Shown in pieces: positions 14,615 to 39,062 of a stretch of DNA of 64,000 nucleotides (the stretch's first letter is position 1; each line of letters opens with the position of its first letter). Origin of the DNA: Anaeramoeba ignava BMAN (Eukaryota; Protista; Anaeramoebae); NCBI GenBank assembly GCA_028826165.1, contig JAPDFW010000022.1, positions 124,001 to 188,000 on the forward strand, given 5' to 3'. The notes below the pieces were generated by a model that made no database searches, was not told where the DNA came from, and worked only from the letters and a program-made list of their open reading frames with translations. The translations under genes were made by a program, and so were the position numbers.

Positions 14615-14753
14615 TTTTCTTTTTTCTTTTTTCTTTTAAATTTGGAAAACAAAAAAAAAAAGAAGAACGAAAATCAAATCCAAAAAATAATAAAATTTAA
14701 TTTTTTTAATTTTTATTTTCAATTTTCAATTTTCATTTTTTTTTTAAATATTA

Positions 14754-17700
14754 ATGGGAAATAAAAGTTTTATTGAAGCAGTACAAAAAGAAAATGAAGA
14801 AAAAATTAAACAAATTTTTCATAAAGGAAAAAATTTAGATAAAAGAGATGTAAATAAAAAATAAATTCAAAACATTGCATTTTTAAACCTTTTTTATTTA
14901 TAATTTTTTTTATTAGGAAGTTTGCTTTTGTTTTCTTTAAATTTTCTTTAATTTTTTAATCTCAATTTTTCCTTTTTTTATTTTATTAAAAAATTTTAGT
15001 TTGTAAAAATTATAAAAAATTTTCAACTTTATTGAAATAATAATTTTAATAATTTATTTTCAGAATAATTCTCCACTTCATGTTGCTTTAAGACATCGCG
15101 CTTCATTTAAAATTGTCTCTCTTTTAATTTCTTTGGGTGCAGATGTAAAAGCAGTTAATGTACATTTTAATTCATTTATTTTTTAAAAAAAAAAACACAA
15201 AAAATAAAATTTCAATTTAAAATCATTTTTAATTAAAGGATGTAATTTTTATCAAAGAATTCATTTTAAAAAATCAAAATTAATTTATTAAATAAAGGAA
15301 GTAATATTTATTCAATAAAAATATAGATAATTATTTATTTATTAATTTTAGAATGCAACAATTCTTCATACTGCTTTGAAAATGGGGAGTTCTTATGAAA
15401 TTATCAAACTCTTAATAGATTCCGGATGTAATTTAAAAGCAGTCAATGTAATTAAAGTTAATTCTTTTTTTTGTTCCTCCTTCAATTTTAATTTTTACAA
15501 ATAATTTTTTAGAATGTAAAAACCAGAGAAATTACTTCTTTCTTTTTTTCTATAGATTGAAAAATATTCATTTAATTGTTTTCGTTTTGTTTTTAGTCCG
15601 TAAATTATCTTTATTAAAAAAAAATATATAAATTTCTTTTAACATTTTCAAATTAAAATTTTTATTTTTAGCTTAATTCATTAATACACTATGCAGTTAT
15701 ATATCAAGCTACTTTTGAAACAATTAAATTATTAATTGAATCTGGTGCTGATTTTGATTCACCAAATGTTTATATTTTGCTAAATTTGAAGTTATACATT
15801 TTCATTTAAATGAAAATCAATAAAAATAATAGAACGTAAATTTATTTTTTTAATCCAAATAATATTATTTAGTTTTGATTAAACTTACTTTAAAAAATTT
15901 TTTTTTTCTTTTAGATTGTATTTAATCAAAATTCTTTTTTTTTATTATAAATTGATATATTTTTATAAATTTGAATATAGCAAAATACTCCTCTACTTTC
16001 AGCTTGTATAAATAGTTCTCCTTGTGAAGTAATTTCCTTACTAATTTCTTCAGGAGCATCTGTTTCAACATCAAATGTTTTTTTTTACAAAAGAAAAATA
16101 AATCTTTTGCATTTCTTGTTATTTAATAATTAATATTTTTAGAAAGTATTTTATTTATATTTTTAACAAGAAAAGAAGAGAATTTACCCGTTTTTATAAT
16201 TTAGTATGTAATTTAGCAAAGAATATTCATCTTTTTTTTTCTAGATGATTAAATAGAATTTTTTAAAAAATAAAAAAAAAATAGAAAGAAAATTGTTTAC
16301 ATCATATTTGTAAACATCCAAATAATGAATCTATTGTGAAACTTTTAATTTCTCATGGAATTGATGTGAATGAAAAAGATGTAAAAACAAAATTCTTAAA
16401 ACAAAAAAAAGAGAATAACAATTAATAACCTTTTTTTTTCAGAATGTAAAATTATTTTCTTTTTTTTGAAATTTTTCATTTAATTTTATAACTTTAAATA
16501 TTATTTATTTTTTTTTAGTATGTATTTTAATCATAAAATAAAAATAAGAAAATAATTAAAATCATAAAAATAAATAGAAAAACACTGCACTTCATTATTC
16601 TGTATGGCATAAATCTGGACTTGAAGTTGCAAAAATATTAATTAATTCAAATGCAAAAGTTAATCTGAGAAATGTATTTTTAAAATTTAAAAATGAATCA
16701 AATTTGAAAATTTTTAAATTTTTTTATTAATTAGTATGTAAATAATTTGAGATTCTTCCATTTTAAGTATTTTTGTAATTTTTTTTAAATCTTTATTTTA
16801 GAGAGTAATTGAAACAAAAAAAGGTTGTTTTATTTTTTTTAATAATATATAAATTTTAATCATTTTGAAAACTAGGGAAATACACCTTTACATACTGCTT
16901 TAAGATATAATCCTGATCTTGAATTAATAAAATTACTTGTTTATTCTGGTGCAGATGTGAATATTGCAGATGTATTTTTTCAAAAAAAACATTTCTTTTT
17001 CTTCATTTTTTATTCAATATCCATTTAGTATGTAAAAAATCAAACATATTTTTTTTAGGGAATAATAAGGAAAATCAAATAACATTTTTTTTGTTTTAGA
17101 ATGTAAATATGCTTTTTTTTTTTTTGAGTTGTTTTATTAAATAGATATTTTTTTAATCGTAATATTAACATAAATAATTCATTTATAGAATAATACTCCA
17201 ATGCATTTTGTATGTTCAAAGCATGATCCAAATGAAGAAATTGTTGAAATTGTTAAATTCTTATTATCAACTGGAGCGAATATTACCAAAAAAAATGTAG
17301 AAAAAAAAAATCTGTTTTTATTCATTATTATTATTATTATTTAATATGAAAATTATAGAAAGTATAAAATAATAATTATTTAAAAAGAAATGAAACAGGA
17401 AAAAAAATTAAAATATTTGATAAAATTTAGTGGGTAATTTAAATATATAATGAAAGTATATAATTTAAATATAATAAAAATATATATTTTAATTAAAGGG
17501 AGAATCACCTATTGATTTAGCAAAAACTAAAGAAATTAAAGATTTGTTCAAATGCCATTTATCTGTGGTTGAAGATTTCAAAACATTTCTACAAAGACAA
17601 GAGGAAACAAACATTTCTTTTCAAGTTGAAGATGGAGAATTGCATTTAAATAAGACAATACTGAAAATGAGAATAGGAGAAGATGGAATCAATCAACTCA

Positions 17701-29088: not shown

Positions 29089-30864
29089 ATGAATGATTGT
29101 TTATTTTTTGGTTTAAATGAAAATCCAAAACTTATCAAAAATGAACCAAATGAAATAAAAAAACCAATTCAATTTAAATTTGAAAATGAAAATGAAAATG
29201 AAAATGAAAAACAAATTAAACAAATTTCATCAGGAGATTTCTCAATAATTTTCCTTTTTGAAAATGGAAAAGCAATAGAACATTTAAATGAAAATTATTC
29301 AAAGCAAAAACCTGAAAAAATCCAAATTGTAGAAAATATTCAAAAAGTAACTGTTGGTTATGAAGATGAAGCTATTTTAACAATAGAAAGAAATGTATTT
29401 GCAAAAGGAAAAAATATTAATCCAAAAAATCCAAAAGAATTTATCAATATTTCATCATTAATTGAAGATTCAAATGATAGAATAATTCAAGATATTGTTT
29501 CTGGAAGAAATACAATCTACTTATTAACTTCAAATCAAAATGCTTATGGAATTGGTTTAAATGAAGATGGTCAACTTGGTTTTGATTCTATAACACTTTT
29601 CAAAACAGAAAAACCAATTTTAATGATGAAAAATGTTTCTAAAATATTTTCAGGAAATACTTCAGAACATGTTTTTCTTTTAAATTCAAATCAAGAATTA
29701 TTTGGATGCGGAAATAATATATATGGTAAACTTGGATTAGGAGAATCAAGAAAAAAAGAAATAAAAATCCAAAAATTAACCAAAATCCAAAATATTCCAA
29801 AAGGCAAAATAATTGATATTCAATGTGGGCATGCTTATTCAATAATATTGATTGAAAATGAAAATGAAAATCCAAAAAGAAAACTTTATTCATGTGGAGA
29901 TTATGAATTTAATGGATTTGGCAAAAAAAATAAAGATACTTATGAATTTACTGAAATCAAATCATCTTTATTTGAAAATGATGATAATATTCTTGAAATT
30001 TCTGTTGGAAATGCTCATACTTTGATTTTAACATCAAATTCAAAATTGATTGGATTTGGATGGAATCAATATGGTCAATTAGGAACTGGAGATACATATA
30101 ATCAATTAATTCCTATTCAAATTGAACTTCCTAAATTAAGATTTAATGAAAATATTTATAATTATCATATTTCTTGTGGATTGTATAAATCATTTATTTA
30201 TTATTCTCCTTTTCTTTCTTCTTTTTCCAATCTTGAAGAAGATTTGATAAAATTATTTGAAAGAAAAGAATTTTGTGATATTTCATTTAAAACCAAAAAT
30301 GGAGAAATAATCAAAGCTCATAAATTAATATTGAAATATAGATTAAATCAAAATGAAATTGAAATTGAAAAACTTCAAGAAATTATTTCAAATAAATCAA
30401 TTAAAGAATCAAATCAAATATTTGAAATGATTTATTCAAATAGAATAATAAATCCAATATTATATTCTGAAATTAAAGAAATTATAAATTCCAATGAAAA
30501 AATTGAAGAAACAATTAAAAGAATTTATTTAAATGAAAATGAAAATGAAAAAGATTTTATAATTGAAAGAAAAGAAAAACAATATAAATTTCCTAAATTA
30601 ATATTAATAATGAGAAGTGAATTATATCGAGGAATGTTTTTATCTGTAACAGAAGATAAATCAAACAAAGTTACAGATTATAGTGAATTAAGTAATAAAT
30701 CATTTCAAATATTAGAATATTGGATTTATTCAAATCAAATTAAAGATGAAATTCAAATTACACAAGAAATAATTGATGAAATTGAAATTGGAATTGATTA
30801 TTTTCAATTAAATCAAACAAATCCAAATTTATTTGATTTATTAATTAACAAATTTAAAAATTAA
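29089..30864 (+). CDS. RCC1-repeat + BTB protein (copy 2, intact, intronless)
   Basis: 591-aa ORF, tandem paralog of copy 1. Confidence 0.9.
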   Translation: MNDCLFFGLNENPKLIKNEPNEIKKPIQFKFENENENENEKQIKQISSGDFSIIFLFENGKAIEHLNENYSKQKPEKIQIVENIQKVTVGYEDEAILTIERNVFAKGKNINPKNPKEFINISSLIEDSNDRIIQDIVSGRNTIYLLTSNQNAYGIGLNEDGQLGFDSITLFKTEKPILMMKNVSKIFSGNTSEHVFLLNSNQELFGCGNNIYGKLGLGESRKKEIKIQKLTKIQNIPKGKIIDIQCGHAYSIILIENENENPKRKLYSCGDYEFNGFGKKNKDTYEFTEIKSSLFENDDNILEISVGNAHTLILTSNSKLIGFGWNQYGQLGTGDTYNQLIPIQIELPKLRFNENIYNYHISCGLYKSFIYYSPFLSSFSNLEEDLIKLFERKEFCDISFKTKNGEIIKAHKLILKYRLNQNEIEIEKLQEIISNKSIKESNQIFEMIYSNRIINPILYSEIKEIINSNEKIEETIKRIYLNENENEKDFIIERKEKQYKFPKLILIMRSELYRGMFLSVTEDKSNKVTDYSELSNKSFQILEYWIYSNQIKDEIQITQEIIDEIEIGIDYFQLNQTNPNLFDLLINKFKN

Positions 30865-30869
30865 AATTA

Positions 30870-31720
30870 ATAAAGAAAATGGGAACAGATTTAATTTAAA
30901 ATTTAATTTATAAATTAATTTAAAAATATAATTTAATATTTAATTCCATTATTAAAATAATAATTTATTGTTTTAGATTTAAATATTTTATTATTTAAAA
31001 ATTAAACATATAAATATAAAAAATGAAAATAGATTTAATTTAATATTTAATTTATAAATTAATTTAAAAATATAATTTAATATTTAATTTTATTATTAAA
31101 ATAATAATTTATTGTTTTAGATTTAAATATTTTATTATTTAAAAATTTAACATATAAATATAAAAATAAGAATAGATTTAATTTAATATTTAATTTATAA
31201 ATTAATTTAAAAATATAATTTAATATTTAATTTTATTATTAAAATAATAATTTAATGTTTTAGATTTAAATATTTTATTATTAAAATATTTACATATAAA
31301 TATAAAAATGAAAATAGATTTAATTTAATATTTAAATTATAAATTAATTTAAAAATATAATTTAATATTTAATTTTATGTTTAAAATAATAATTTATTGT
31401 TTTAGATTTAAATATTTTATTATTTAAATATTAAACATATAAATATAAAAATGAAAATAGATTTAATTTAATATTTAATTTATAAATTAATTTAAAAATA
31501 TAATTTAATATTTAATTTTATGTTTAAAATAATAATTTAATGTTTTAGATTTAAATATTTTATTATTTAAATATTTAAAATATAAATATAAAAATGAAAA
31601 TAGATTTAATTTAAAGTTTAATTTATAAATCAATTTAAAAATATAATTTAATATTTAATTTTATGTTTAAAATAATAATTTATTGTTTTAGATTTAAATA
31701 TTTTATTATTTAAAAATATT
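30870..31720. repeat. AT-rich satellite A, ~143-bp unit, ~6 copies
   Basis: The anchor AGATTTAATTTAA recurs near 30887, 31031, 31174, 31315, 31459, 31602. Confidence 0.88.
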
Positions 31721-32017: not shown

Positions 32018-35000
32018 TTAAATGAAATAAGTCTCAAGTTCATCAACAAACCATTCATCAAAAGAACCAGCTAAACAACTTCTAGCTTCATTTGTATCAT
32101 ACTTAATTCCATTAGGTAGATTATAACTAAAACCAAAATTTGAATAACCAGATTGTAAATCAGAATCTATCCAAATATCAGCTATAAATATTTTAATAAA
32201 GATAAATAATTAATTTTAATAATAATTAATAATAATTTAATTTAAAATTAATTTTATTTTAAATTTAAATAATAATATTATTTATTATATTAATATTTTG
32301 GATTATTTATTAATTTAATTTTAATTATAATAATAAATATTTATTAAATATATATTATTTACGATCTATTTTAATAAAGATAAATATTTAATTTTAATAA
32401 TAATTAATAATATTTTAATTTTAATTTTTTTTAAATTGAAATAATAATATTATTTATTATATTAATATTTTGGATTATTTATTAATTTAATTTTAATTAT
32501 AATAATAATTATTTGTTAAATATAAATTATTTACCATCTATTTAAATAAAGATAAATAATTAATTTTAATAATAATTAATAATAATTTAATTTTATTTTT
32601 AAATTGAAATAATAATATTATTTATTATATTAATATTTTGGATTATTTATTAATTTAATTTTTAATTATAATAATAATTATTTATTAAATAAAAATTATT
32701 TACCATCTATTTTTAATAAAGATAAATAATTAATTTTAATAATAATTAATAATAATTTTATTTAAAATTAATTTTATTTTAAATTTAAATAATAATATTA
32801 TTTATTATATTAATATTTTTGGATTATTTATTAATTTAATTTTAATTATAATAATAAATATTTATTAAATATATATTATTTACAAACTATTTTAATAAAG
32901 ATAAATAATTAATTTTTAATAATAATTAATAATAATTTTATTTAAAATTAATTTTATTTTAAATTGAAATAATAATATTATTTATTATATTAATATTTTG
33001 GATTATTTATTAATTTAATTTTTAATTATAATAATAAATATTTATTAAATATTAATTATTTACCATCTATTTTAAATAAAGATAAATAATTAATTTTAAT
33101 AATAATTAATAATAATTTAATTTTATTTTAAATTGAAATAATAATATTATTTATTATATTAATATTTTGGATTATTTATTAATTTAATTTTAATTATAAT
33201 AATAATTATTTGTTAAATATAAATTATTTACCATCTATTTAAATAAAGATAAATAATTAATTTTAATAATAATTAATAATAATTTAATTTTATTTTAAAT
33301 TGAAATAATAATATTATTTATTATATTAATATTTTGGATTATTTATTAATTTAATTTTAATTATAATAATAATTATTTATTAAATAAAAATTATTTACCA
33401 TCTATTTTAAATAAAGATAAATAATTAATTTTAATAATAATTAATAATAATTTTATTTAAAATTAATTTTATTTTTAAATTGAAATAATAATATTATTTA
33501 TTATATTAATATTTTAGATTATTTATTAATTTAATTTTAATTATAATAATAAATATTTATTAAATATAAATTATTTACCATCTATTTAAATAAAGATAAA
33601 TAATAATTTATTTTTAAAATTAATTTTATTTTTAAATTAAAAATAATAATATTATTTATTATATTAATATTTTGGATTATTTATTAATTTAATTTTAATT
33701 ATAATAATAAATATTTATTAAATATATATTATTTACTAACTATTTTAATAAAGATAAATAATTAATTTTAATAATAATTAATAATAATTTAATTTAAAAT
33801 TAATTTTATTTTAAATTAAAATAATAATATTATTTATTATATTAATATTTTGGATTATTTATTAATTTAATTTTAATTATAATAATAAATATTTATTAAA
33901 TAAAAATTATTTATATTTACCTCCTCCAAAAATTGGACCATAATTTAAATAATAAAGAAGTGCATGTTTTTCTTCTCCTTTTTGAATTGTAAACTTCTCT
34001 GGTTTTCTATCTCCTTTACCATTTCTTAATGAAAAAATAAATGAATTTGAATCTGGAATATTTCCATAATCATCGTTTCTATCTTCTTCTCTCCATTTTG
34101 ATTTATCATTTGTCCATCCAACTTGAGTAAATCCTCCAAAAATAAAATTATCTTTTGTTTTGATAATAACTAATGTTTTTCCTTTATCATCACAAATTGA
34201 ATGCCAATTTTTAGAATTAAATCCATCTTTTTTTGCTGAAAATCCTTTTTTCATTTTAGAAAAAAAATCATTATCATTTATCCATTCTTGTAATTTCTTA
34301 ACATATTCAATATCTTGAATAATTTCTGAATCTGAAAGAAATCTTTGTTTAAAAATGAATGAATTTCGATTTTGATTTTCTTTTTCAATGAATTCATTTA
34401 ATTCATTTAATTTTTCTTTATCATTTTGAATAATTTGAAATTGAATTAATTTTTGTGAAATTTGATTTGGAATTAAATCTTCTTTCAAACTATCTTCAAG
34501 TTCTTGGTTTGTGAAATCAATAAATCTGATTTTATCAATAATATTTGAAATTTGATTTTGTAATTTTTCTTTTTCTTCTTTTTCAAGTTTTTGATTTTCT
34601 TTTTCTTGAATAATATTTGATTTATGTTTTCCCCATTTGATTATTGATTGGAAAATTTTAAATTCATTTGTTAGAATATAATCATTTGATAAAATTGAAT
34701 TTAAATGATTTTCTTCAAGTTCAAGAAAAAATGGAGTTTTAATAAATTCTTCAAAATTTTTTGAAATAAATTTATAAGAAGAATTCAATAATTGATTTAA
34801 GTTCATTGATTCAGATAATTTAAGAACATCAACAATAGTTTCAATTTGTAAATTGTTTTTGATAAAATTTAAACAAATTTCAGTTAATTCATCAATAAAA
34901 TATTTTGATGAAAAAATTAAAATTTCTATTGCATTTTCTAAATTAATTTCAATTTTTCCTGAATAAAAATAATTCAAAATTGAAGATAGAATTGAACTTG

Positions 35001-35235
35001 AAACATCTTTTAGAATCATTTTATTTTCTTGATATTCTTTCATTTTTGATTTGAAAAGAGATTTAAAATATTGACTTCTTGAAGAAAGAATTGATTTATG
35101 AGTTTTAAATGAAGTTTTGTTTTGTTCACAAATTATTTCAAAATCAAAATAACTTTCTTCTTCTTTTTCATTTTGATTTTGAAATAAATTTTTTAAATCA
35201 TTTGAAAGTTTTTCTAAATTTAAATAAGTTTCCAT
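32018..35235 (-). CDS. BTB-BACK-TLDc protein with micro-exon array in the TLDc domain
   Basis: Exon 35235-33921 (BTB FKTHKSILSSRSQYFKSLF, BACK, TLDc KDGFNSKNWHSICDDKGKTLVIIKT..FIFGGFT..GPIFGG). Terminal exon 32181-32018 (DIWIDSDLQSGYSNFGFSYNLP...WFVDELETYFI*) matches the C-terminus of paralog 37660..38265. Confidence 0.88.
32182..33920 (-). other. Tandem array of 10 near-identical introns (155-181 nt) separated by nine 3-nt micro-exons
   Basis: On the minus strand each junction reads AAATAG|NNN|GTAAATAA. Micro-exons 5'->3': TTA 33739-37, ATG 33581-79, ATG 33401-399, ATG 33234-32, ATG 33066-64, TTT 32886-84, ATG 32706-04, ATG 32537-35, ATC 32365-63. Full inclusion (phase 1) gives GG-VNDDDVYDDP-DIW. 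Confidence 0.78.
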
Positions 35236-35277
35236 TTTAAATAAAATTTGAAAGAAAAAAAATGAAAAAAATGAAAA

Positions 35278-36270
35278 AATGAAAATAGATTTGATTTAAT
35301 ATTTAATTTATAAATTAATTTAAAAATATAATTTAATATTTAATTCAATTATTAAAATAATAATTTAATGTTTTAGATTTAAATATTTTATTATTTAAAT
35401 ATTTAACATATAAATATAAAAAATAAGAATAGATTTAATTTAATATTTAATTTATAAATTAATTTAAAAATATAATTTAATATTTAATTTCATTATTAAA
35501 ATAATAATTTATTGTTTTAGATTTAAATATTTTATTATTTAAAAATTTAACATAAAAATATAAAAATGAAAATAAGTTTAATTTAATATTTAATTTAATA
35601 AATTAATTTAAAAATATAATTTAATATTTAATTTCATTATTAAAATAATAATTTATTGTTTTAGATTTAAATATTTTATTATTTAAATATTTAACATATA
35701 AATATAAAAAATAAGAATAGATTTAATTTAATATTTAATTTATAAATTAATTTAAAAATATAATTTAATATTTAGTTTTATGTTTAAAATAATAATTTAA
35801 TGTTTTAGATTTAAATATTTTATTATTTCAAATATTTAACATATAAATATAAAAAATAAGAATAGATTTAATTTAATATTTAATTTATAAATTAATTTAA
35901 AAATATAATTTAATATTTATTTTTATGTTTAAAATAATAATTTAATGTTTTTTAGATTTAAATATTTTATTATTTCAATATTTAACATATAAATAAAGAA
36001 AATAAGAATAGATTTAATTTAATATTTAATTTATAAATTAATTTAAAAATATAATTTAATATTTAATTCTATTATTAAAATAATAATTTAATGTTTTTTA
36101 GATTTAAATATTTTCTTTATTTAAATATTTAACATATAAATATAAAAATAAGAATAGATTTAATTTAATATTTAATTTATAAATTAATTTAAAAATATAA
36201 TTTAATATTTAATTTTATTATTAAAATATTAATTTAATGTTTTAAATTTAAATATTTTATTATTTAAAAA
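35278..36270. repeat. AT-rich satellite A, ~145-bp unit, ~7 copies (same family and orientation as 30870-31720)
   Basis: Same unit (AATAGATTTAATTTAATATTTAATTTATAAATT...GTTTTAGATTTAAATATTTT). Confidence 0.88.
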
Positions 36271-36656: not shown

Positions 36657-38265
36657 ATGGATAACAATAATAATAATAATAACCAAATTGAAAATGCAAA
36701 TCAAATTCAAAATCAAAATGAAATGAAAAATTTAGAAAAAAAAGTAACAAAAAATTTAATTGAAGATTATTCAAACCTTTTAAATGGAAATTCATTTAAA
36801 GATTTTTCAATTTTGTTGAGAATAAATCAAATCCTTTTGAAATTAAAGTTCATAAATCAATTTTATCTTCAAGATCTCCTTTTTAATGAATCATTAAGGC
36901 AAGAATCTCTTTCTATTTCTTTAAATCAATTTAATAAAAAAGAAATGGAATCAATTTTGAGTTATATTTATTATGGAAATATTTCTTTTGAGAATCAAGA
37001 AAATCTTATCCAATTATTAGAAATTTCAATTTATTTTAAATTAAATTTATTGAAAGAAATTATTCAAAAAAAATTTTAAATTCAATTAATTATTCAAATT
37101 TTTTCCAATTTTTATTCCAAAATCGAAATTTAAATTCAAATGAAATTGAAATAAAATGTTTTGAATTAATAAATCAAAATTTTTCCCAAATTCAGAATAA
37201 TGAGAATTTATTCAATTTAACTAAAGAAGAAATTATCAAATTTATTCAATTTAAACAAGAAAAAAAAGAAATTTTTCAATTTGATTTTTTTCAATTTTTA
37301 AATAATTGGATTGAAAAAAGAATTAAATCATTAAAATTAAGGAAATATAAACACAAAATGAATGCAAAGAAAAGATTATTTCATTCTTTTTTTTCATTAT
37401 TTGATAAAGATTCAATTTCAAAACAAGATTTTGATAAATTAAAACAATTTGAGATTTTTCTTCCTAAATCTTTTTTAGTTGATATTCAAAACAAAGTTAT
37501 TCAAGATAATCAAAAAGAAAATCAACAAATGAAAATTGAAATTGAAGAGAAATGGAAGATAAATGGAAGAAAGAAGTTGAAAATGGAACAAAAAAGAAAA
37601 GTTGAAGATAAAAACAAAGAAATTGAAGAAATGAGAAATGGAAGAAAGAGGTTGAGAAAATGAAACCTGTTTTTGATGAATATGAAAAGAAAATGCAAGA
37701 ATTAAAAAAGAATTTTCCTCAATTTGCAGATTCAGAAATTATTACAGAAGAAGAATATGTTAAGAAATTACAAGAATGGATAAATGATAATGATTTTTTT
37801 TCTAAAATGAAAAAAGGATTTTCAGCAAAAATAGATGGATTTAATTCTAAAAAATGGCATTCAATTTGTGATGATAAAGGAAAAACATTAGTTATTATCA
37901 AAACAAAACAAAATTTTATTTTTGGAGGTTTTACTCAAGTTGGATTTAATGGAAATACAGAATACATTAATGATTCAAATGCATTTATTTTTTCATTAAG
38001 AAATGATAAAGGAGATAGAATACCTGCAAAGTTTACATATAAACAAGGTGGTGCAATTTATTCTAATTTAAATTCTGGTCCAACATTTGGTGATGGAAGT
38101 AATGATTTTTGGTTATCTTCTAATTTACAACCTGGTTATTCAAATTTTGGTCGTAGTTATAATCTACCTAATGGAATTACTTATAATACAAATGAATCTT
38201 ATAGTTATTTAACTGGTTCTTTTGATAAATGGGTTGTTGATGAAGTTGAATCTTATTTCATTTAA
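36657..38265 (+). pseudogene. BTB-BACK-coiled-coil-TLDc paralog broken by several frameshifts (pseudogene or consensus errors)
   Basis: Pieces 36657..37079, 37358..37663 and 37660..38265; the BTB motif IKVHKSILSSRSP lies in an alternate frame near 36840-36880. The TLDc part is very similar to the 33907..35235 ORF and is intronless at GPTFGDGSNDFW. Confidence 0.7.
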
Positions 38266-38739: not shown

Positions 38740-39062
38740 AATATATTTTATTTTGGATTAAAATTGAAATAATAAATAATTAAAAATATTAATATAATAA
38801 ATGAAAATATTATATCAAATTAAAATAAAATAAATTTAAATTAAATTATTATTAAAAATTATTAAAATTAAATATATATCTTTATTAAAATATTTATTCC
38901 ACTTTTTAATATATTTTATTATAATTAAAATTGGAATAATAAATAATCAAAAATATTAATATAATAAATGAAAATATTATTTTAAATCAAAAATAAAATA
39001 AATTTAAATTAAATTATTATTAAATATTATTAAAATTAAATATTTATCTTTATTAAAAATAT
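38740..39062 (+). repeat. Two degenerate intergenic copies (~168 bp) of the micro-exon-array intron unit
   Basis: ATAATTAAAATT..AATAAATAATCAAAAATATTAATATAATAAAT...ATTATTAAAATTAAATATTTATCTTTATTAAAA matches the reverse complement of the 32182-33920 unit but lacks the GT/AG ends. Confidence 0.6.

Follow-up and report, generated by a model that had tools for sequence, protein, structure and literature searches.

Does a coding sequence interrupted by ten tandem copies of a complete intron contain one intron or ten? The question is raised by a gene for a BTB-BACK-TLDc protein of Anaeramoeba ignava BMAN, located in the 64,000-nucleotide (nt) stretch of contig JAPDFW010000022.1 analysed here (the window; C13:124001-188000 of the 42.8-Mb assembly). 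Between the two exons of this gene lies an interval of 1,739 nt (32182-33920, minus strand), composed of ten head-to-tail GT...AG intron copies of 155-181 nt and nine triplet spacers. A direct join of the outer exons would remove the whole array, and separate splicing of every copy would leave nine one-codon exons in the mRNA. We found that the guanines of the internal acceptors and donors are under purifying selection, while the spacers between them evolve as free sequence across the family. As judged from sequence, the productive mRNA would be the direct join without spacers; we favour this reading weakly (probability about 0.45) over one-codon exons.

The intron array of the window

Exon 1 comprises 438 open codons and is identical (100%) to residues 1-438 of a public A. 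ignava protein of 492 amino acids (aa), P0001. The precomputed Pfam domains of this protein include BTB (PF00651), BACK (PF07707) and TLDc (PF07534). Exon 2 adds 53 open codons. The array opens with GGAG|GTAAAT at 33920 and closes with TTTATAG|CTGAT at 32182. All nine internal junctions read (A)AATAG-NNN-GTAAATAA, with TAG and GTAAAT present at each, and the units, every one of them running from GTAAAT to (A)AATAG, can be aligned end to end over their full length. Tandem Repeats Finder describes the interval as period 180 with 10.0 copies and 88% match. A period of 336 scores higher and corresponds to a two-unit higher-order repeat, in which units 4-5 and units 8-9 form a duplicated pair. The unit number and single-base details rest on one public, nanopore-based assembly. 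The parts are listed below.

33921-35235, minus strand: exon 1 of the BTB-BACK-TLDc gene; ATG at 35235, end ...GGA GGA G in phase 1
33740-33920, minus strand: unit 1 with the outer donor, 181 nt; starts GTAAATATAAATAA, 6 bases longer than internal units
33737-33739, minus strand: spacer 1, TTA
33582-33736, minus strand: unit 2, 155 nt, with an internal deletion of 23 nt
33579-33581, minus strand: spacer 2, ATG
33402-33578, minus strand: unit 3, 177 nt
33399-33401, minus strand: spacer 3, ATG
33235-33398, minus strand: unit 4, 164 nt; units 4-5 are similar to units 8-9
33232-33234, minus strand: spacer 4, ATG
33067-33231, minus strand: unit 5, 165 nt
33064-33066, minus strand: spacer 5, ATG
32887-33063, minus strand: unit 6, 177 nt; RNA fold computed
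32884-32886, minus strand: spacer 6, TTT
32707-32883, minus strand: unit 7, 177 nt
32704-32706, minus strand: spacer 7, ATG
32538-32703, minus strand: unit 8, 166 nt
32535-32537, minus strand: spacer 8, ATG
32366-32534, minus strand: unit 9, 169 nt
32363-32365, minus strand: spacer 9, ATC
32182-32362, minus strand: unit 10 with the outer acceptor, 181 nt; ends AAAATATTTATAG, 6 bases longer and T-richer than the internal AAAATAG
32018-32181, minus strand: exon 2, 53 codons and stop, CT GAT ATT TGG ... TTC ATT TAA; equals P0001 residues 440-492
37660-38265, plus strand: TLDc part of a neighbouring paralog, intronless at the site, with loop DGSN; comparison sequence GPTFG-DGSN-DFWLSS

The first-pass annotation had described the locus as a tandem array of complete introns, each followed by three nucleotides, and this description is correct in every detail, including the nine junctions and the listed triplets. 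Translation confirms its phase-1 product of full inclusion, GPIFGG-VNDDDVYDDP-DIWIDS. Any subset of the spacers is in frame and free of stops, as it had claimed: this holds for 512 of 512 ordered subsets, which together yield 88 peptides with residues D, V, Y, P, N, A, S, I and T. The suggested concentration of substitutions in the triplets was also found, with 5/27 non-consensus positions in the triplets and 37/1515 in the unit bodies (odds ratio 9, Fisher p = 6e-4). The proposal of a young array of variable copy number agrees with the higher-order repeat, with the 96% identity of the units and with the range from 2 to at least 23 units among paralogs. Unit number and triplets do differ among TLDc paralogs, but the annotation missed that the array is a fixed-site feature of the whole family and is not private to this gene.

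Arrays of the TLDc family, their splice sites and spacers

A BLAST search with one unit gives at least 765 matches, and tandem clusters are present at no fewer than 32 places on 17 contigs. The 24 arrays that we inspected all occupy one phase-1 site (GPxFG | D-I/F) of TLDc paralogs, and their introns are 0.37 to 4.1 kb long; no unit insertion in an unrelated gene was seen among them. These arrays are bordered by ...GG-CC-...TTTGG(x)|GTAAATAT at the exon 1 end and by ...ATATTTATAG|xTGATATT at the exon 2 end; with exon 1 written as protein, the borders are ...GPxFG(G)x|GTAAAT and ...ATAG|xTGAT. TLDc paralogs form a very large family: over 319 proteins were matched, and the genome has at least 150 copies in which no intron interrupts the sequence for this part of the domain. 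Genome-wide, a spacing of k = 3 accounts for about 651 occurrences of the pattern AAATAG-N(k)-GTAAATAA, compared to about 2 in a reversed control. The counts at other spacings (18 at k = 0-2 and 42 at k = 4-9) are at or below controls, and the zero-nucleotide spacing has 2 occurrences in the genome.

The units are 96.5% identical within arrays and 96.3% identical between arrays on different contigs. The flanks of the same paralogs show 88.7% (exon 1), 84.9% (exon 2) and 86% (3' flank) identity. Since units from different loci resemble each other as closely as units of one array do, and more closely than the flanks, the arrays appear to have been homogenised across loci or to have spread recently, well after divergence of the genes.

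For the 32,108 annotated introns of A. ignava, the modal length is 76 nt, the mean 300 nt and the greatest 4,168 nt, and their G+C content is 8.1% (PMC11550330, supplement). The longest of them may be one of the arrays described here. The array intron at L015 (C137:744000-753999) measures 4,132 nt. Units of other families, measuring about 75 nt and about 107 nt, were observed at L036/L039 (C1:408342-412019), C57:592567-595690 and C137:611000-615100. Their junctions read ...AATAAATAG-NNN-GTAAATAATTAAAT and have codon-like spacers (GAT, GAA, AGA, CAA, CCA, TAT and others). In the array at C1:408342-412019, a tract of (ATT)n about 1 kb long separates the units into two parts, and GT has been lost from a few junctions.

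For the analysis of conservation, 192 units from 21 arrays were cut at a mid-unit anchor, the junction playing no part in their selection. The G of AG is retained in 188 of the 192 units (98%; the other four are gapped) and the G of GT in 186 (97%; two substituted and four gapped). A/T consensus columns have a mean conservation of 99.0%. The other G/C columns comprise four C positions in the unit body, conserved at 55%, 64%, 84% and 78%, and the third spacer base, where G is found in 42% of units. Among the 19 arrays with at least five units, these other columns are polymorphic in 11-19, the acceptor G in none and the donor G in two. The splice-site guanines are thus kept where other G/C positions have decayed, so the internal acceptors and donors are under purifying selection, which implies that they are seen by the spliceosome.

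Two further observations concern units elsewhere. The array at L044 (C114:13983-17279) belongs to a truncated gene, whose public model (P0002, 440 aa) ends within the intron, and is decaying: several of its donors are lost (TAG TTT AAAAAT, TAG TTTT AAAT), one spacer has 4 nt and some junctions are lost completely. A sibling satellite with the same body and the junction ...AAAATATTTATTCCACTTTTT..., which contains neither AG nor GT, was found only outside genes, for example at the following places.

38740-39058, plus strand: sibling satellite, intergenic, just downstream of a TLDc gene
C137:161000-170999 (L016): sibling satellite of about 31 units, downstream of a TLDc gene

At the RNA level, the first 13 nt of unit 6 (32887-33063, minus strand), including the donor, can pair with ATTAATTATTTAT located about 15 nt upstream of the acceptor. 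The predicted fold has a minimum free energy of -25.4 kcal/mol and z = -2.5, which is modestly better than shuffled sequences and weak evidence for a sequence of 92% A+T. Such pairing might draw the two ends of the intron towards each other, or might be a chance feature of this composition. The unit has no Rfam match at E <= 1, and C/D or H/ACA boxes are not visible in it by eye.

The spacers are the most variable columns of the alignment of 192 units, with A at position 1 in 53%, T at position 2 in 82% and G at position 3 in 42%. The commonest spacers are of the form xTG (ATG, TTG, CTG, GTG), together with derivatives in which G is replaced by A or T (ATT, ATA). Exon 2 of the paralogs starts with A/G/C-TGAT, so the consensus spacer is the same as its first three bases. 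The variety of triplets looks like mostly the decay of exon-derived G/C in a genome that decays every unconstrained G/C. The G+C content of spacers is still about 27%, near that of exons, compared to 8% in introns.

As assembled, neither the length nor the reading frame of the spacers is guarded. Spacers of 2, 4 or 5 nt account for 13 of 240 (5.4%) and are scattered across 11 of 24 arrays; the spacer window is changed in length in 12/192 units, versus a median of 4/192 for 3-nt windows of the body. Phase-1 stop codons were observed 3 times against 4.4-5.9 expected from shuffling (P = 0.30, 0.12), and stop avoidance was therefore discarded as a proof of translation. Full inclusion would leave 6 of about 17 complete arrays out of frame; the gene of the window and 10 other complete arrays would be in frame without a stop. 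Two full-length, otherwise intact genes are affected: a GGGA spacer blocks read-through in P0292/L013, and in P0003/L017 the frame shifts of spacers lengthened by 1 and 2 nt cancel out, but a TGA lies between these spacers. Frame-breaking spacers are located, among other places, at C73:353587 (GGGA) and at C35:351483 and 352601. Family-wide, the spacers evolve as free sequence, without coding constraint.

Possible splicing outcomes

One phase-1 intron position in the turn of the TLDc domain is filled by ten head-to-tail copies of the complete intron. The founding event would be a tandem duplication of the intron together with the first three bases of exon 2, because the consensus spacer xTG coincides with the exon 2 start. 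Copy number changes by unequal exchange, to which both the higher-order repeat and the spread of unit numbers among paralogs point, and exchange between arrays could keep the at least 32 loci alike, in agreement with the identities between and within loci and with the comparison to flanks. An acceptor and a donor only three nucleotides apart probably occlude each other, and loss of one of the paired sites would unmask a strong cryptic site within the intron. The two sites would then have to be retained or lost as a pair, which would account for two conserved guanines beside an unconstrained spacer. Isoforms carrying 1 to 9 additional codons may arise in this gene as minor in-frame by-products, and a major direct join accompanied by a minor in-frame ladder is quite possible. 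The direct-join model explains the asymmetry between guanines and spacers, the lack of constraint on stops and length, and the public gene models.

Among these models, P0001 has the direct join, exon 1 ending in ...GGAGGAG followed by CTGATATTTGG (GGAG|CTGAT), which gives the protein ...YGPIFGG-A-DIWIDS and hence the loop GG-A-D. At least 15 public models of array genes were compared, and every one either has the direct join or ends inside the first unit. An AlphaFold2 model of the TLDc domain of the public direct-join protein has a mean predicted local distance difference test score (pLDDT) of 94.5; in it, strands 146-147 and 152-154 are linked by a four-residue turn that contains the junction. 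Protein searches for fragments or complete proteins found no transcript-derived protein across the junction, the hits being otherwise proteins from genome annotation; the sole transcriptome protein found (P0106) is a long-loop paralog with loop DGNS, which we take as array-free. Two further clues from proteins were rejected. The spacers seemingly fused to exon 1 in the truncated models P0002 and P0005 would have been a trace of splicing unit by unit, but turned out to be ordinary GGAT|GTAAATAT ends in genomic DNA. The loops of intronless paralogs are uninformative as possible fossil spacers (NYY = ATT ATT), default A+T-rich codons giving the same letters.

The strongest competitor, to which we give slightly less weight than to the direct join, is a cassette in which each unit is an intron of its own and the spacers are one-codon exons. 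The protein would then read GG-VNDDDVYDDP-DIW, or a shorter ladder, and the length and sequence of the loop would evolve codon by codon through unequal exchange. Selection on the internal AG and GT speaks for such a cassette, and the decaying array at L044, with its lost donors in a truncated gene, gives the picture expected when selection is absent. Frame and stops also suit it for the gene of the window, where all 512 subsets are readable, and for the 10 other complete arrays mentioned above, and the spacers have retained an exon-like G+C content.

A number of observations weigh against the direct join. Loops at this position vary from 1 to 21 residues with a mode of 3 (120 family members), and 9 of the 10 one-residue loops, the shortest of the family, are direct-join models of array genes; direct joins would thus make abnormally short loops. 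The weight of the public models depends on the evidence behind them. Mutual occlusion is a mechanism proposed for this organism by analogy, and with equal sites and short introns the naive expectation would be pairing of neighbouring sites, and hence inclusion. Nearly all spacers that deviate from 3 nt differ from a common triplet by a one-base change in a short T/G run. The nanopore-based assembly was polished with short reads, and short reads are not uniquely placeable in such arrays. If the frame-breaking spacers were assembly errors, the main argument against inclusion would fall.

The strongest support for the cassette comes from four tandem TLDc paralogs on C1 (about 1,057,900-1,073,500) that contain the same array.

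C1:1067968-1071264: paralog L046
C1:1057841-1061137: paralog L047
near C1:1064744 and near C1:1073239: further copies

In the two paralogs read, the units are 56-159 nt long with a median of about 70 nt, which is near the intron mode of 76 nt. They have lost over half of their interior and kept GTAAAT and the last 20 or so nucleotides (ATTTATCTTTATTAAAATAG, 94-97%), and the spacing is 3 nt at 33 of 33 junctions. The complete array is free of stops and would encode GPSFG-YYDDPWANFDDDDFYHA-DIE; the other is likewise open over its fetched part. Ageing of this kind would be expected of separately spliced introns. The arrays of L046 and L047 match unit by unit, with 16 shared spacers, 3 of which differ (each ATG versus GGG or AGG), which suggests that spacers change by copying from other junctions and not by point mutation. 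The absence of fused units in C1 was considered as a sign of selection on each junction and was set aside, because a deletion spanning a junction again yields a normal-looking unit.

A gene for an ankyrin-repeat protein in the same window (14750-17500, plus strand) provides a second parallel. Inspection by eye shows that 9 of 9 gaps between its 32-codon repeat exons contain exactly two AG-NNN-GT pieces (GAA/TTT, GAT/GAA, AAT/TCC, AAC/ATT, AAA/TAT, AAT/TAT, TAT/AGA, TAT/AAT and AAA/TGG) with good acceptor tracts. The repeat exons span from G to D, and the two residues that canonically precede the next G (D-x-x-G) would come from the two pieces. From this layout, 3-nt exons may well be spliced in A. 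ignava. Since these repeats derive from one another by copying, the regularity counts as one ancestral layout kept nine times, not as nine events. The annotated model (P0135, 261 aa) could not serve as a positive control: it covers only the C-terminal exon and omits the ankyrin region. For the cassette, 18 of 18 regular 3-nt candidates are nevertheless a favourable point, and such an omission is what one would expect if reads with 3-nt exons cannot be aligned.

Against the cassette stand the spacers themselves. Frame-breaking lengths reach two intact full-length genes, and neither stop avoidance nor length constraint is seen. A 4-nt spacer and a lost splice-site G would be equally fatal to a cassette, yet the fast-mutating guanines are kept and the slow length changes are common. 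Arrays of 18 to at least 23 units would exceed any loop length of the family, and the public models all have the direct join. The first-pass annotation had proposed a loop generator. In this form the proposal is not supported, given spacers that behave as unconstrained throughout the family, triplet variety that mostly reflects decay of exon-derived G/C, and public models that use GGAG|CTGAT. Its link to older micro-exon layouts is plausible in the light of the C1 paralogs, where shrunken units retain donor, acceptor and 3-nt spacing.

A wider proposition, which we hold to be doubtful though worth stating, is that some 30-40 BTB-TLDc proteins have one surface turn spelled by single-codon exons between cloned introns. 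If so, unequal exchange, possibly together with alternative pairing of donors and acceptors, would lengthen, shorten and re-spell the loop residue by residue. The arrays would age by shrinking and divergence of their units, as in C1, into the scattered 3-nt exons of ankyrin genes. This would represent both a birth mechanism for micro-exons and a splice-based diversification of a protein loop.

Much less probable is a selfish intron, whose excised RNA would be copied back beside existing copies or into paralogs, the spacers being leftovers of target sites. Only intact GT...AG units would propagate in this way. The units are indeed exact introns, their bodies are as alike between loci as within loci and more so than the flanking exons, and variation is concentrated outside the excised part. 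However, the inspected arrays with intact junctions are all at one homologous site of one family, with none seen in unrelated genes. A constant 3-nt spacing in head-to-tail order has no known insertion mechanism, whereas unequal exchange explains both, and the higher-order repeat points to duplication at the DNA level.

Slightly less probable again is a neutral intronic minisatellite, removed as one long intron in which AG and GT would be inert passengers kept constant by recent amplification. It would suit an array that is young and homogeneous, the direct joins of public models, and a genome where long introns are annotated (mean 300 nt, longest 4,168 nt). It does not account for the splice-site guanines, polymorphic in 0 and 2 of 19 arrays when other G/C columns are polymorphic in 11-19, for the sibling satellite without splice sites that occurs only outside genes, or for the loss of donors in the truncated gene at L044. 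An array or unit number made by the assembler is hardly credible, even for a nanopore-based assembly, since 32 or more loci share the architecture but have their own flanks and differ in their spacer series, and arrays of 0.4-4 kb are well within long-read length.

Relation to known systems

Whole-intron tandem arrays at one site in dozens of paralogs, with selected splice sites, do not seem to have been described. A literature search found no description of them, and the genome paper (PMC11550330) is without mention of such arrays. The closest known kinds are intronic minisatellites and the tandem-duplication models of intron gain. Like an intronic minisatellite or variable number of tandem repeats locus, the array is a head-to-tail repeat of high identity that lies wholly within one intron of an otherwise intact gene, has a higher-order repeat and differs in copy number among gene copies. 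The A. ignava unit differs in being a whole intron with both splice sites and three additional nucleotides, and in having selected internal guanines. The array differs in occupying one homologous site in at least 30 dispersed paralogs, among which it is homogenised.

The model of Rogers (1989), together with later surveys, reportedly derives new introns from segments with an AGGT sequence that were duplicated in tandem. In both cases tandem duplication at the DNA level adds GT...AG intervals and leaves the frame undisturbed. Here an existing intron, and not an exonic AGGT segment, was duplicated, many times over, and 3-nt pieces were left between the copies. Introners, or introner-like elements, are near-identical introns spread through a genome, and A. 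ignava likewise has many near-identical spliceosomal introns in one genome. In contrast to introners, its arrays are tandem and restricted to one site of one gene family. Transposon hallmarks (terminal repeats, target-site duplication) are not evident in the units, although the 5' end can pair with a segment near the acceptor, which at 92% A+T is weak evidence for terminal inverted repeats; the spacers do not represent duplicated target sites.

Recursive splice sites, or ratchet points, of long introns in Drosophila and vertebrates consist of AG|GT with a zero-length exon and leave nothing behind. The A. ignava junctions resemble them in having adjoining acceptors and donors inside a long intron, so that stepwise removal is conceivable, but with a spacing of 3 nt each step would leave a codon. 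Work by Black (1991) and by Dominski and Kole (1991) is said to have shown that very short internal exons are skipped through steric hindrance between the factors bound at their 3' and 5' splice sites. Similar interference would be expected wherever a few bases are all that separates an acceptor from a donor, and the occlusion that we propose builds on this likeness. The effect was shown in vertebrate systems with exon definition; the introns of Anaeramoeba are short (mode 76 nt).

Micro-exons of 1-15 nt are known in plants (PMC8831610). The micro-exon genes of schistosomes and the 3-nt micro-exons of animals and plants share with the arrays symmetric tiny exons that are able to vary a protein and are often unannotated. 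Known micro-exons are conserved and flanked by unrelated introns, whereas the A. ignava pieces are hypervariable, lie between cloned introns and in 5% of cases have a length not divisible by three. In the array of the window every piece has a competent acceptor and donor beside it, as in a micro-exon cassette; with inclusion putative and such lengths present in the family, assignment to this class would be premature.

If the arrays are removed whole, they offer a natural test of how the spliceosome of a short-intron genome passes over dozens of perfect decoys spaced 3 nt apart. If the spacers are included, the arrays represent a novel means of building a protein loop and of varying it, and make an origin of micro-exons visible. 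In either case there is a consequence for annotation, as public models skip the array or end inside it.

The array gene is itself flanked by a second repeat. A satellite with a period of 143/144 nt and 94% match is located on both sides in direct orientation, at 30852-31717 (about 6 copies) and 35274-35995 (about 5 copies). These flanking satellites could favour duplication or loss of the gene.

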